Source: Macrostomum lignano
Lineage: Eukaryota
Direction: 5' to 3'
Length of the DNA: 64,000 bases
Assembly (NCBI GenBank): GCA_002269645.1
Contig: NIVC01001680.1
Coordinates: 1-64,000 of the forward strand
Numbering within the stretch: the stretch's first letter is position 1; the number at the start of each line of letters is the position of its first letter. Below are positions 24,126-30,439 of this stretch, piece after piece. The position numbers and the translations under genes were made by a program. The notes beneath the pieces are model-generated. The model was not told where the DNA came from. It was given only the letters and a program-made list of their open reading frames with translations, and ran no database searches.

Positions 24126-26509
24126 ATGTGCTTGAAGCAGGTCCTCACCTTCGAAGGGCAGGATCTGGTCGAGGACGCCCTTTGGTCGCTGCGGCCTGGC
24201 TGGCTGGTCAAATTCAAAAGCGGGCACTCCTGGCAAACCGGGGTCTACATTGGCATCGGATTGCTGAGCATCTCCGAAAATGGCGAGTCGTTTGTCACGC
24301 CACGACAAGAGGAGTGTGATACTGGCAACACCAGTCCGCTGCATCACCTGGTCTGTCACCTACCCAGGTGCAGTTCCAGCCGTGAAGGTGTGCTAGCAAT
24401 CAAGGACTTTCGAGAATTGGCCGAGAACTCTGAATCCATTAAGGTTTATGAGTGCAACTGCGACGAGGCTAAGCGGAAGAGCGTCATTCGTGCCTGTCTG
24501 ATGCGGCTGGGAGAAGTGCGAGTCAATTCCGCCGAACTTTTTGAGCACTTCTCTGCGTATAGGAAGGGGCAGTGGAAAACAATTTTCACAAATGGCTTTA
24601 CTTTGCTTTGCGACGTTTTTAAAAGTTTCATTGGGCAGAGGCCTGCCACTGGAACAGCAAATGACTTGTCATCGGATTTGTGAGTAGGCGAAACATTTTC
24701 TTAATCTGGCATCAACTTGGGTCTTTTTAAGATCGGTTTTCTGAGTTTCTGGCGGTGACATCAAAGTCTGAGTAGGACACTGACATCACCAGGGACTCAA
24801 ACATGTAAATGGTGCTTGGGTCATCAGGGGTAGTTTTATAAAGTGCCAAGGCTTCACCATCTTACGTGTACATTTTGCAATTTCCACTCACTAATACAGT
24901 TATCACATGACTATAAGCGATAAACCAATTACAGGCACATCTTTCTGCTGGAAAACACATCTGACTGGGTTGACGCTATTTCTCAAGAAAGCCGCCAACG
25001 ACTAAGCGACTTCTCTAGAGCGTTGCTGGTTTCACCAAATTATGAAACAGCAAATGGCTTTGAGACATTTCTAAGTTGGATTGCGGGACTTGAAAGCGAC
25101 AGTCGTGGCAGCGGGACGGCTGCCTTGACAACCTCTGCGTCACATTATCTGCGTTCGTTTACCAGCGCCAGGATTTCGCCGAAGTCAAAATGGTCTGGCG
25201 CAGCAGTGCAGTTTGAGAGGCTTAACGACAGTCTACAAGGTACGACCATGATAGTGTGGGTAACGGGTGCAAATGTACATTTATGTTTACTTAGCGGGTA
25301 AATTGTACCCTCAGCTCGACTCTCGTACCAAACTACATGTACATGTACTGTAGCTACATGTAGCTGCGTTCGATGCCTTGAGGCTTGAGTCAACCACAAA
25401 CAAAGTGCGGGGTTGTGTGTGTGTGATCGTATCTTTGTCTTGCCTCCTCGCTCCTGAACTGTAGCCCTGTGAAATAAATGCGTCAATATATTTAAGGTTC
25501 ATTTTTTTACCATACATTAATTCGGCCTATAGTTGATTTTAAGAGCTCGATCATTTTGTCATCTGACATTTCAGGACTCGACTCTTTCTTTAACGAGCTA
25601 CTGAATAGCTCCACCAGAAGGTGACTAATGTTTTCAATAGCTACATGAAATTACATACCAGACATTGCGAGTATGCCATTAGTAAACTAACTTTGCACTT
25701 CTTGTACTCCTAACTTCAGCGAGGAAAATGCTGCAATTGCCGCTCCTGAGACTCGCACTACCCGACGCAACCCTCCGTCTCTGGATTGCTACCCGGTAAC
25801 GTCTCCGCAAGGATTCTGCGCGGTCATCAACATCAACAACTACGATGACAATACGAACCTTGGCCGCCGCTCCGGATCAGAGCACGACGTTGCTCGCATC
25901 AGAGAGGTGTTCGAAAGCTCAACTTTGTGATAGAAGTCAAAGAGGACTTGACGTCACACGAAATCGACAGTTTTTTGACGAATTTAGCCCACGACGAAAG
26001 GCTGGAACAGCACGGATGCTTTGTGCTCTTCTTGATGGCGCACGGCTTGAGGCGAGAAATCTTCGGTTGCAACGGAATGCCAATAGACTTAAGCCGCATC
26101 GTTCAGTCATTCAGCTCCACATTTGCCCGGGCCTGCAAGGTAAGCCCAAGATCATCGTGATTCAGGCTTGCCGAGGCACGCGACTTCAATTCGGTCGCGC
26201 GGCCCCTTGAGAGATAGCTCGTCGGATAATGGAGAGTTCGGGTGCTACTCTCCTAGGGGCAAAGACTTCTTGGTGTGCTTTGCAAGCGGCGGAGATACTC
26301 CGGCTTTTCGAGATGCAAATACCGGTTCCGACTATGTACAGGCACTGTGCCGCGAGGTTGAGACGCATCACCAAAGTGAGCACATTGTGGACATTGTCAC
26401 CCGCGTCAACAATGCAGTTTGGCGAGCTCCGGTGCAGCAGGGTGAAGTGCAACTGTACACAGCTCCTGAGTTTACTAGCAGTCTCACTAGGAAGTACTAC
26501 TTGAGCTAG
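24126..26509 (+). CDS. Gene 1: catalytically degenerate LRAT/PLAAT-like domain + helical linker + caspase (HG, QACRG); 4 exons; three apparent 1-nt deletions in the caspase exon
   Basis: Exons 24126-24679 (phase 2), 24935-25239 (phase 1), 25575-25620 (phase 2), 25720-26509. Caspase motifs: GFCAVININ, RRSGSEHDV, LMAHG (26035-26046), KPKIIVIQACRG (26163-26177), DFLVCFAS, GSDYVQALC, APEFTSSLTRKYYL. Frameshifts near 25915, 26120 and 26180-26207. Confidence 0.8.
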
Positions 26510-27371
26510 TTGAGATCCAGCTTTATTAACTGGAAACTGATTTAATAAAAAACTACTGCTTTCCCTTCATAGTATTTGAAAGTACCTCCTTCAGCTAATT
26601 ATGTTGATTTCTGAGTAATGTGAAGTTGAAAATTAAAATCCATTATCCAATCGAGCTTCATTTTGCCGTATTAACGCTAATTAGTTACCCGATCAACTTG
26701 ACTTGAACGCGTAATTGATCTTTAAAAAGCAATGCGTTCTTTCGGTATAAAACGTCTCTTATCAACTACTTAAGATTCACAGATCATTACCGTTTTTAAA
26801 ACAATACCTGTTATTTTCATGTACGCTACAGTTTGTATTGTAACGCTACCCAGCTGAAAAAATGCTTAGAACTTTTGCTGTTTCTTTTCTACCGTCGCGC
26901 TTTAAAAAATTTATACATTTTTCCACAATATAATCACTGTATACTTATTTATCAAAAAATAACTTTGCACTCTTCCGTAGATCACCTGATTTTGCATACG
27001 ATGTTTTGTTTTTTGAAAAAAACGTCTACTGAGCAGTTTCCGACGAGTCCACTTGGTCAATTGCCTTGAGAAACAAAAATGAAAAAGAATTGTGCGTTTA
27101 ACTGTTCAAAGACAAGACTATTTTTCTTGCTACGGAGGAATGAAATTCTGCTGTTCTGTTGTAGTTGTTGTCTGCATAGTTGGACATTAAAAACAGCCAG
27201 TCCTGCATTGGTGCACTTGTGGCAAACTACGGCAAGTCCTTGGAATTGCCGTGGATTTTTCTTTTAAATTAAAGCATGCACACAGACTACTCAACTCATC
27301 TATCGACGCGTGTACGTTCGGTGAGTTTAAGACATGCGCTACTGCTAAGGCACTTTGCTAACTTTGAAAAA

Positions 27372-30300: not shown

Positions 30301-30439
30301 AATTGTCACCAGCGTCAACAATCAGCTGATTAAAAATAGTGCCCGACAGAGTGTCGAGGATGAAGCAGACCCAACCAGTAAAGCTCCTGAGTTCATATCC
30401 AGTCTCACCAAGAAGTTCTTCTTCCGGCCCTGCAATTAG
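27372..30439 (+). CDS. Gene 2: LRAT/PLAAT-like domain (H..NNCEHF intact) + helical linker + pseudocaspase (QTSQK); 4 exons, ~507 aa
   Basis: Exons 27372-27928 (phase 2), 28491-28660 (phase 1), 28744-28813 (phase 2), 29713-30439 form an uninterrupted frame with the same exon-phase pattern as gene 1. YFHFCIYLG, NNCEHF at 27771; LMAHG retained; KPKLFFLQTSQK at 30092-30106. Confidence 0.85.
27936..28466 (+). repeat. (TAC)n microsatellite in gene 2 intron 1
   Basis: About 530 bp of TAC repeats. Confidence 0.98.
29374..29680 (+). mobile_element. tRNA-derived SINE, copy 2, with an internal (CTTAA)n expansion
   Basis: Collinear with the reverse complement of 22890-23197. 29460-29522 is an expanded ACTTAA array. 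Confidence 0.8.

Follow-up and report, generated by a model that had tools for sequence, protein, structure and literature searches.

Background

The prodomain of a caspase determines the place and manner of activation of these cell-death proteases, and the well-studied prodomains, CARD and DED, are to our knowledge all adaptor-binding modules. Here we analyse a 64,000-nucleotide stretch of the Macrostomum lignano genome (assembly GCA_002269645.1, contig NIVC01001680.1, positions 1 to 64,000 of the forward strand; hereafter the window) in which two adjacent genes, gene 1 (24126-26509) and gene 2 (27372-30439), each join an N-terminal domain of the LRAT/PLAAT type to a C-terminal caspase domain, and in which the two genes have lost complementary sets of catalytic motifs. 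Three described systems come closest to this arrangement, and each resembles a different part of it.

The nearest parallel for the pair as a whole is the human CFLAR-CASP10-CASP8 cluster at 2q33.1, a group of adjacent paralogues derived from one ancestral long-prodomain caspase, in which cFLIP(L), a pseudo-caspase paralogue located beside CASP8 and CASP10, heterodimerises with procaspase-8 (PMC7586951). Genes 1 and 2 are likewise adjacent paralogues (in tandem, about 860 bp apart), and one of them, gene 2, resembles cFLIP(L) in being a Cys-less pseudo-caspase that is predicted to keep both the fold and the prodomain type of its neighbour. A heterodimer between the members of the M. lignano pair is putative. 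The pair differs from the cFLIP system in that the prodomain has a PLAAT/LRAT-type enzyme fold in place of tandem DEDs, in that gene 2 has changed its catalytic Cys to Ser and kept its catalytic His, and in that the loss is reciprocal, as the putatively active member, gene 1, has lost the catalytic residues of its prodomain, for which cFLIP offers no counterpart. Because its prodomains are LRAT-like rather than DED, the pair is an analogue of the cFLIP family and not a member of it.

For the N-terminal half, the relevant family is PLAAT/HRASLS/LRAT (PF04970). Gene 2, a third caspase fusion at a separate locus (Mlig004795, described below) and three of the four further LRAT genes in the window (genes 3, 5 and 6) score above the family cutoff and carry the H-box His and the NCEHF Cys, and the predicted structures show a PLAAT-like order of strands and helices, with PLAAT3 and PLAAT4 as the best structural matches. 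Unlike described family members, the three caspase fusions have neither a C-terminal transmembrane anchor nor a conserved canonical second His; their N-domains share an insertion of 10-25 residues after the H-box hairpin, which is absent from genes 3-6; and the domain is fused to a caspase or, in genes 3-6, to a zinc finger resembling the UBR box.

Finally, the lophotrochozoan caspases with ANK, kinase, PARP, ROC or Z-binding prodomains (PMC11463336) are comparable examples of lineage-specific replacement of CARD and DED by domain shuffling. LRAT/PLAAT is not among the prodomains reported there, and the M. lignano prodomain differs further in that it is potentially a lipid-modifying enzyme and is accompanied by a reciprocally inactivated tandem partner. 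The same 2024 survey recorded a kinase-prodomain caspase in M. lignano and detected no other unexpected prodomain in platyhelminths (PMC11463336).

Two adjacent LRAT-caspase genes with complementary motif loss

Both genes lie on the + strand and consist of four exons separated by canonical GT-AG introns of phases 2/1/2, the layout that an earlier note, made from the sequence of this stretch, had ascribed to two adjacent paralogues. That note had also described the first His and the nucleophile of the LRAT domain as lost in gene 1 with the caspase motifs kept, and the LRAT His and NNCEHF as kept in gene 2 with QTSQK in its caspase half; both descriptions are borne out by the profile alignments and gene models given here.

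Gene 1 begins with an exon (24126..24679; Met-Cys start, donor GTGAGT, phase 2) that encodes an LRAT/PLAAT-like domain predicted to be catalytically dead. Exons 2 (24935..25239, 3' end in phase 1) and 3 (25575..25620, 46 nt, 3' end in phase 2) encode a linker that opens with the motif HIFLLE, in which the F-L-L columns are invariant across the family alignment, and exon 4 (25720..26509) encodes the caspase domain, its frame broken in the window by three 1-bp deletions that we consider below. A poly(A) signal (AATAAA, 26544..26549) follows 35 nt past the stop codon. In the LRAT-profile alignment the H-box His of gene 1 is replaced by Gln (WQTGVYIG, 24231-24254) and the Cys of the NC motif by Phe (ELFEHF, 24534-24551), and Pfam LRAT (PF04970) gives no match to either copy of gene 1 at E-values up to 1. 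The assignment of the domain comes instead from its similarity to the N-domain of gene 2 (36% identity, E 1e-25), from its alignment with an independent LRAT profile built without the M. lignano paralogues from the gene 1/gene 2 array (hhalign 97%, E 7.8e-11), and from an AlphaFold model (mean predicted local distance difference test, pLDDT, of 75.8) for which the best six Foldseek matches in the PDB are to PLAAT4, PLAAT3, an HRASLS3/LRAT chimera, TIG3 and H-REV107. A sequence search of the N-domain profile against the PDB gave weak PLAAT matches (E 0.12-0.26) that are useful for motif register only. We interpret this domain as a pseudo-enzyme version of the LRAT/PLAAT fold.

The caspase half of gene 1 scores 142 bits against Peptidase_C14 after frame repair, and the intact second copy of the gene scores 139 bits (PF00656 cutoff 21.4). 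Both motifs of the catalytic dyad are in place (MAHG, 26035-26046; QACRG, 26163-26177). The residues that we take to determine Asp specificity in the S1 pocket, Arg-179, Gln-283 and Arg-341 in caspase-1 numbering, were placed partly from motif knowledge, and by alignment all three are found, in RRSGSE, in the Q of QACRG, and in the Arg loop FRDANTGS (26306-26329). By these motifs gene 1 reads as a motif-complete caspase whose LRAT-like prodomain is dead.

Gene 2 shows the converse pattern. Its first exon (27372..27928; Met-Cys start, phase 2) encodes a motif-complete LRAT/PLAAT domain, exons 2 (28491..28660, phase 1, with VFVFLLRD at its start) and 3 (28744..28813, phase 2, its 70 nt equal to the length of Mlig004795 exon 3) encode the linker, and exon 4 (29713..30439) encodes the putative pseudo-caspase domain, followed 27 nt past the stop codon by a poly(A) signal (AATAAA, 30466..30471). 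The four exons form an intact open reading frame (ORF) of 507 residues from the Met-Cys start, and from end to end this model agrees with the annotated protein BOX15_Mlig027562g1 (Mlig027562.g1) at 100% identity. RNA-seq and transcript assemblies were the only basis of the Mlig_3_7 annotation, with gene ends cut by trans-splice and poly(A) evidence (PMC5730564), so the identity of the annotated protein with our model gives the three junctions of gene 2 indirect transcript support. The annotated coding sequence starts at an upstream ATG (27276), 32 codons before the Met-Cys start that is common to every paralogue; the resulting 32-residue extension is of low confidence in the AlphaFold model.

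Pfam scores gene 2 at 44.3 bits for LRAT (cutoff 24.3) and 112 bits for Peptidase_C14. In its N-domain the H-box (FHFCIYLG, 27477-27500) and NNCEHF (27771-27788) are kept; in its caspase half MAHG is retained (29963-29974), QACRG has become QTSQK (30092-30106) with the catalytic Cys changed to Ser, and, in the alignment to other caspases, a 5-residue deletion takes out the Arg-341 loop of the S1 pocket and leaves Arg-179 and Gln-283 in place. The AlphaFold model has an LRAT-like domain with pLDDT of 84-95 over most of its length, falling to about 60-70 in two short stretches, a linker of some 100 residues below 50, and a caspase-like domain (residues 300-539) at about 90. When the full-length model was searched with Foldseek, the top 50 matches were without exception caspases, CED-3 and one from an insect among them, and nothing was returned on the N-domain; the caspase-like domain matches caspase-7, -3 and -8 best, with target template modelling (TM) scores up to 0.89 and E-values down to 1.8e-17. 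The modelled pseudo-caspase half would hence keep the caspase/hemoglobinase fold, and gene 2 as a whole reads as a pseudo-caspase attached to a motif-complete LRAT domain.

The position of the third LRAT triad residue is less clear-cut. In PLAAT3 the second His lies 12 residues past the first. The corresponding column holds Glu in gene 2, Ile in gene 1 and Lys in Mlig004795, and a family-specific 'CH' column holds Gln in gene 2 and Mlig004795 and His in gene 1 and genes 3-6. The earlier note had read the second His of gene 2 as Gln, which holds in the family alignment (FICQL) and fails in the hhalign alignment and the AlphaFold hairpin, where the residue is Glu (LVSE); the assignment therefore depends on the alignment chosen.

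Two further observations concern the introns of gene 2. Most of intron 1 is occupied by a (TAC)n microsatellite of about 179 copies (27936..28471, + strand), which reads as a poly-Tyr tail in the ORF list if the donor at 27928 is ignored. In intron 3, a tRNA-like stretch at about 29376-29450, picked out by eye from a GGTTCGATTCC box, was unsupported by ARAGORN or Rfam; it may be a degraded tRNA-derived short interspersed element.

A motif-complete paralogue and the probable origin of the fusion

A third fusion, Mlig004795.g2 (542 residues), is a singleton at a separate locus (L002). It has five exons with phases 2/1/2/2, which is the 2/1/2 pattern of genes 1 and 2 with one extra symmetric exon, and it keeps all the motifs of both halves (HFAIYIG, NNCEHF, MAHG and QACRG), with Pfam scores of 58 (LRAT) and 149 bits (C14). 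The caspase domains of gene 1, gene 2 and Mlig004795 are 44-48% identical to one another, and no other caspase exceeds 41% identity to them; the nearest are M. lignano caspases with ANK and Roc/Ras prodomains. Together with the insertion that their N-domains share, we infer from these sequences a single fusion event, followed by duplication and then by complementary loss in the tandem pair. As Mlig004795.g2 retains all the catalytic motifs, its ancestor with genes 1 and 2 probably had both halves motif-complete. Since gene 2 equals a protein derived from RNA-seq, and since three paralogous loci share their intron phases, we take the LRAT-caspase fusion to be a real gene architecture.

A duplicate locus, frameshifts and selection

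The same assembly contains a second, collinear copy of the locus (L003, NIVC01001035.1), 96% identical over gene 1 and with the gene order of the window: a SNARE gene, gene 1, gene 2, an LRAT/zinc-finger gene and an ANK gene. Compared with this copy, exon 4 of gene 1 in the window changes frame three times through 1-bp deletions at 25912/13, 26120/21 and 26196/97, where L003 has an additional G (window 25912), A (26120) and A (26196). The first premature stop in the window falls at 25928-25930, and the corrected frames contain no nonsense codons. Pfam searches with the raw pieces of this exon were obstructed by in-frame stops, which was resolved by reading in three frames and by comparison with L003. 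Gene 1 of L003 is an intact ORF of 567 residues in four exons (1,704 nt) with canonical splice sites, and it carries the same dead LRAT motifs and complete caspase motifs as the window copy. The earlier note had called for repair of the three frameshifts; an intact copy of the gene is present at L003, and the deletions are real in the sequence of the window. Gene 2 is intact in both copies, the version in the duplicate being P0093.

Single-base losses are not confined to gene 1. Over 18 kb of alignment the window contig shows 17 against 6 in L003, in coding and non-coding sequence alike. In a conserved, syntaxin-like t-SNARE gene a 1-bp deletion at 23429 disrupts the C-terminal part, with the SNARE motif and the membrane anchor, whereas the corresponding exon of L003 reads through intact; two more deletions (36181 and 36972) lie in a coding exon of the ANK gene, whose frame is broken near 36972 and which is called at 368 residues in the window as against 1109 in L003. 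The assembly was made from PacBio reads with Canu and polished with Pilon, and 180 Mb of it lies in blocks at least 95% identical, which are hard to polish. Given this background and the spread of the losses over coding and non-coding sequence, we lean, with modest conviction, towards residual long-read consensus errors over decay of a redundant duplicate as the cause of the gene 1 deletions. Whichever the cause, the genome contains one intact gene 1, that of L003.

Gene 1 appears in the protein databases in one place, UniProt A0A1I8G9H9 (P0094, from the ML2 assembly), an ab initio model of 1822 residues that wrongly fuses five genes (the SNARE gene and genes 1, 2, 3 and 4) into one protein; in its gene 1 part, two of the three sites at which the window is frameshifted are read through.

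Between the two copies, gene 1 has a ratio of non-synonymous to synonymous change (dN/dS) of about 0.50, with 21.5 synonymous and 36.5 non-synonymous among 58 changes; the synonymous count compares with about 13 under neutrality (z about 2.6, by our own arithmetic). For exons 1-3 alone, which encode the dead LRAT domain and linker, the ratio is 0.34. Gene 2 has a similar ratio (about 0.51), which at only 18 changes is not significant. We grade the evidence for selective constraint on the pair as weak to moderate. Because L003 carries the same substitutions as the window, the reciprocal loss of motifs predates the duplication of the locus.

Distribution of the architecture

We searched for the combination of an LRAT domain and Peptidase_C14 with two profiles. 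An exhaustive search of 1.84 billion representative proteins with a hidden Markov model of the N-domain returned 80 matches at E-values up to 1e-3, of which 78 belong to the LRAT family; only two also contain Peptidase_C14, and both are from M. lignano. A profile of the whole family, run against 5.8 billion proteins, found PF00656 and PF04970 together nowhere outside M. lignano, with a sensitivity below that of the N-domain search, as only the 8,000 candidates richest in shared short words were scored. In both searches unannotated eukaryotic contigs had been gene-called without introns, so that split fusions elsewhere could escape. The closest LRAT relatives, on contigs from ENA ERZ25074695 (L004) and SRR13325274 (L005), consist of the LRAT exon alone; no caspase was called in the 10 kb downstream of the first or in the rest of the 7-kb contig of the second, in intron-less calls that make this result uninformative. 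Four long-N-terminus caspases that scored well, a protein of the sponge Oopsacas minuta and its close relatives (P0007, P0101-P0103), were considered and set aside: their N-termini are helical and DED-like by eye, and no LRAT domain is recorded in them.

In the literature open to our search no paper contains both 'LRAT domain' and 'caspase domain', and nothing relevant came up for PLAAT or H-rev107 together with caspase or for the gene identifiers. The LRAT-caspase architecture is visible in automatic database annotation, yet it is undescribed in the searchable literature, in agreement with the earlier note, whose author knew of no caspase with an H-box/NC prodomain; as far as the two profile searches reach, the fusion is confined to M. 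lignano.

Other caspases of this species also have uncommon prodomains. P0005, P0006, P0009, P0012, P0099, P0100 and P0004 comprise several caspases with ankyrin-repeat prodomains and one with a Roc/Ras prodomain. The published survey describes ANK caspases as limited to parasitic flatworms (PMC11463336); M. lignano has several. The presence of ANK and Roc/Ras prodomains in caspases of the same clade as the LRAT fusions, together with the reported kinase prodomain, indicates that prodomain swapping is active in the lineage.

Interpretation and alternative readings

We consider the most plausible account, which we hold with evenly balanced confidence, to be a family of caspases with an LRAT prodomain, within which the tandem pair became a pseudo-caspase modulator and a caspase by complementary loss. 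An LRAT/PLAAT-type domain (NlpC/P60, H-box/NC) here occupies the place of the CARD or DED prodomain of initiator caspases and is tied to the caspase domain by a disordered linker of roughly 100 residues, and the two products of a tandem duplication would have lost complementary motifs by duplication, degeneration and complementation. The LRAT-like module might serve as a recruitment or self-association domain that gathers caspase domains for proximity-induced activation, possibly at lipid surfaces or through an acyl-enzyme intermediate. PLAAT3(C113S), although catalytically dead, still moves to damaged organelles (PMC12017856), and a dead PLAAT domain can therefore act as a targeting module. 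Gene 2, as a pseudo-caspase, would then modulate gene 1 and Mlig004795, the active members, much in the manner of cFLIP(L) with caspase-8; it may retain acyltransferase or phospholipase activity of its own, and its partnership with gene 1 would be optional rather than obligate.

Several observations weigh against this account. The activity, interaction and localisation ascribed to the pair are extrapolated from sequence and from analogous systems. Gene 1 is without a gene call in the transcript-based annotation of either locus copy, no database protein equal to it was found as an entry of its own, and its window copy is frameshifted. The fold matches of its N-domain are modest (E 5e-3 to 4e-2, TM scores 0.42-0.59), and the model from which they come rests on an LRAT-family alignment. 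The canonical LRAT second His is missing or displaced in gene 2 and Mlig004795, whose LRAT domains might consequently be inactive too, and the dN/dS values of 0.3-0.7 rest on few substitutions. PLAAT proteins are normally targeted by a C-terminal membrane anchor; in gene 1, gene 2 and Mlig004795 we found no hydrophobic segment of transmembrane strength (maximum Kyte-Doolittle 19-residue means of 0.87-1.17, each maximum lying inside a globular domain). Unlike the three fusions, P0027, a related LRAT protein with a Met-Cys start, has a clear C-terminal anchor, and a segment of borderline hydrophobicity (1.6-1.76) is limited to gene 6 and P0015, which belong to the zinc-finger subgroup. The same result tells against the coupling of the pair to membranes that had been suggested in the earlier note.

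Among the alternatives, the one that survives best, although we think it unlikely, is that the two genes encode independent enzymes with no functional link: gene 1 a caspase with a vestigial N-domain, and gene 2 a PLAAT-like acyltransferase or phospholipase with a vestigial caspase-fold tail. Each gene has exactly one complete motif set and its own poly(A) signal, and the LRAT module of gene 4 is dead as well, so that loss of catalysis is common for this module in the array. Set against this, the supposedly vestigial domains keep long ORFs, confident predicted folds and a conserved linker motif, and exons 1-3 of gene 1 have the low dN/dS reported above (0.34). Such preservation of dead domains argues for a retained non-catalytic role.

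Improbable, in our judgement, is the obligate heterodimer, likened to caspase-8/cFLIP, that the earlier note had put forward, in which genes 1 and 2 together supply one live caspase site and one live phospholipase/acyltransferase site and possibly act on membranes as a lytic effector of cell death. The pair does consist of adjacent paralogues with reciprocal motif loss, kept in the duplicate locus; an upstream motif, TGGAATTGCCGTGGA, is common to these two genes only, a hint of co-regulation; caspase/pseudo-caspase heterodimers have precedent; and PLAAT enzymes degrade organelle membranes. We found no direct support for the complex, however, and Mlig004795.g2 holds the motif sets of both domains in one chain, so that two chains are unneeded. 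Complementary loss is moreover the default outcome of subfunctionalisation and by itself no sign of a complex, gene 1 is without a transcript-based gene call, a membrane anchor is absent, and the third LRAT triad residue is uncertain. As a motif-complete paralogue and ordinary subfunctionalisation account for the pattern, an obligate heterodimer is unnecessary.

We attach a slim chance to a more far-reaching version of the favoured account, in which caspases are activated by a domain of a new kind: the LRAT/PLAAT-like module would sense lipids or engage them covalently and dispense with adaptors. Engagement might, for example, proceed through an acyl-Cys intermediate or through acylation of the invariant N-terminal Cys, and it would gather the caspase at damaged or foreign membranes with no need of an adaptor of the CARD, DED or FADD type. 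Gene 2 would in that case be a cFLIP-like pseudo-caspase that still modifies lipids, and the circuit, acting in cell death or immunity, would couple attack on membrane lipids to proteolysis.

Slimmer still is the prospect that these are decaying duplicates, gene 1 being a pseudogene, gene 2 heading the same way, and Mlig004795 the sole functional member, if there is one. The three frameshifts of gene 1 in the window and its want of a gene call in either copy fit decay, as do dN/dS ratios only moderately below 1; 1-bp deletions are found in the SNARE and ANK genes of the window too. On the other side, gene 1 of L003 is intact and the corrected frames of the window copy are free of nonsense codons, the synonymous excess in gene 1 is significant, gene 2 is intact in both copies and supported by transcripts, and the 17 against 6 deletions across coding and non-coding sequence have the pattern of consensus errors.

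A chimera of annotation or assembly, in which two genes, one with the LRAT and one with the caspase exons, were wrongly merged, is very improbable: M. lignano transcripts are often polycistronic precursors (PMC5730564) and A0A1I8G9H9 does merge five genes, but three independent loci and their duplicates have the same domain order and the same intron phases, the frame is continuous over all junctions with no stop or poly(A) signal between the halves, and gene boundaries in Mlig_3_7 were cut by trans-splice and poly(A) evidence.

A prodomain derived from the fold of a lipid-modifying enzyme would mean a different logic of caspase activation, a design that would surprise a cell-death specialist, and the tandem pair provides a second, independent example of pseudo-caspase evolution beside that of cFLIP and caspase-8. 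The catalogue of flatworm caspases is also corrected, as the kinase prodomain had so far been the only oddity recorded for M. lignano. The importance of the family is tempered by its occurrence in one species so far, by the frequency of odd prodomains in lophotrochozoans, and by a function that is deduced from sequence. RNA interference and transgenesis are established in M. lignano, which makes the idea directly testable.

The tandem LRAT array and neighbouring elements

Genes 1 and 2 head a tandem array of six + strand genes, whose LRAT first exons begin at 24126, 27372, 31157, 33349, 40982 and 44261. The first exon of gene 3 (31157..31708) encodes a Met-Cys LRAT module with HFAIYLG and NNCEHF intact (LRAT, 51 bits) and is followed by a UBR-like zinc-finger exon within 32015-32716 (zf-UBR 19.1 bits, under the cutoff). 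That of gene 4 (33349..33966) encodes an LRAT-like module without NCEHF, with a UBR-like zinc-finger exon at 34555-34944. Those of gene 5 (40982..41524) and gene 6 (44261..44806) encode motif-complete LRAT modules, the latter with the borderline hydrophobic tail, and their zinc-finger exons lie at 42029-42358 and 45222-45614, respectively. The C-terminal Cys/His zinc fingers of genes 3-6 bear a weak likeness to the UBR box (zf-UBR 17-19 bits, cutoff 25.2), which is a reader of N-degrons. The Met-Cys start is invariant in all six genes of the array and their paralogues and is found also in the distant relative P0027; the N-terminal Cys might be acylated or act as a Cys-type N-degron.

Upstream of genes 1 and 2 we identified a 15-nt motif, TGGAATTGCCGTGGA, present on the + strand as three tandem copies with an 11-bp period at 23900..23936, some 200 bp before the ATG of gene 1, and as a single copy at 27241..27255, 117 bp before the Met-Cys start of gene 2. 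The window has 5 matches to it where chance would give 0.11, and the motif is conserved at the same positions in L003 (6657-6693 and 9966-9980). No copy was found upstream of genes 3-6 or in the L002 locus of Mlig004795. The motif may be a candidate cis-regulatory element shared by genes 1 and 2.

Beyond the array, the minus strand carries a Maverick/Polinton-like element at 47400-62650. Alongside several long ORFs without a Pfam match, it contains an rve integrase (49860-51125), a protein-primed family-B DNA polymerase with an Endonuclease VII domain (55879-58440) and a deoxynucleoside kinase (60289-61011), all on the minus strand.

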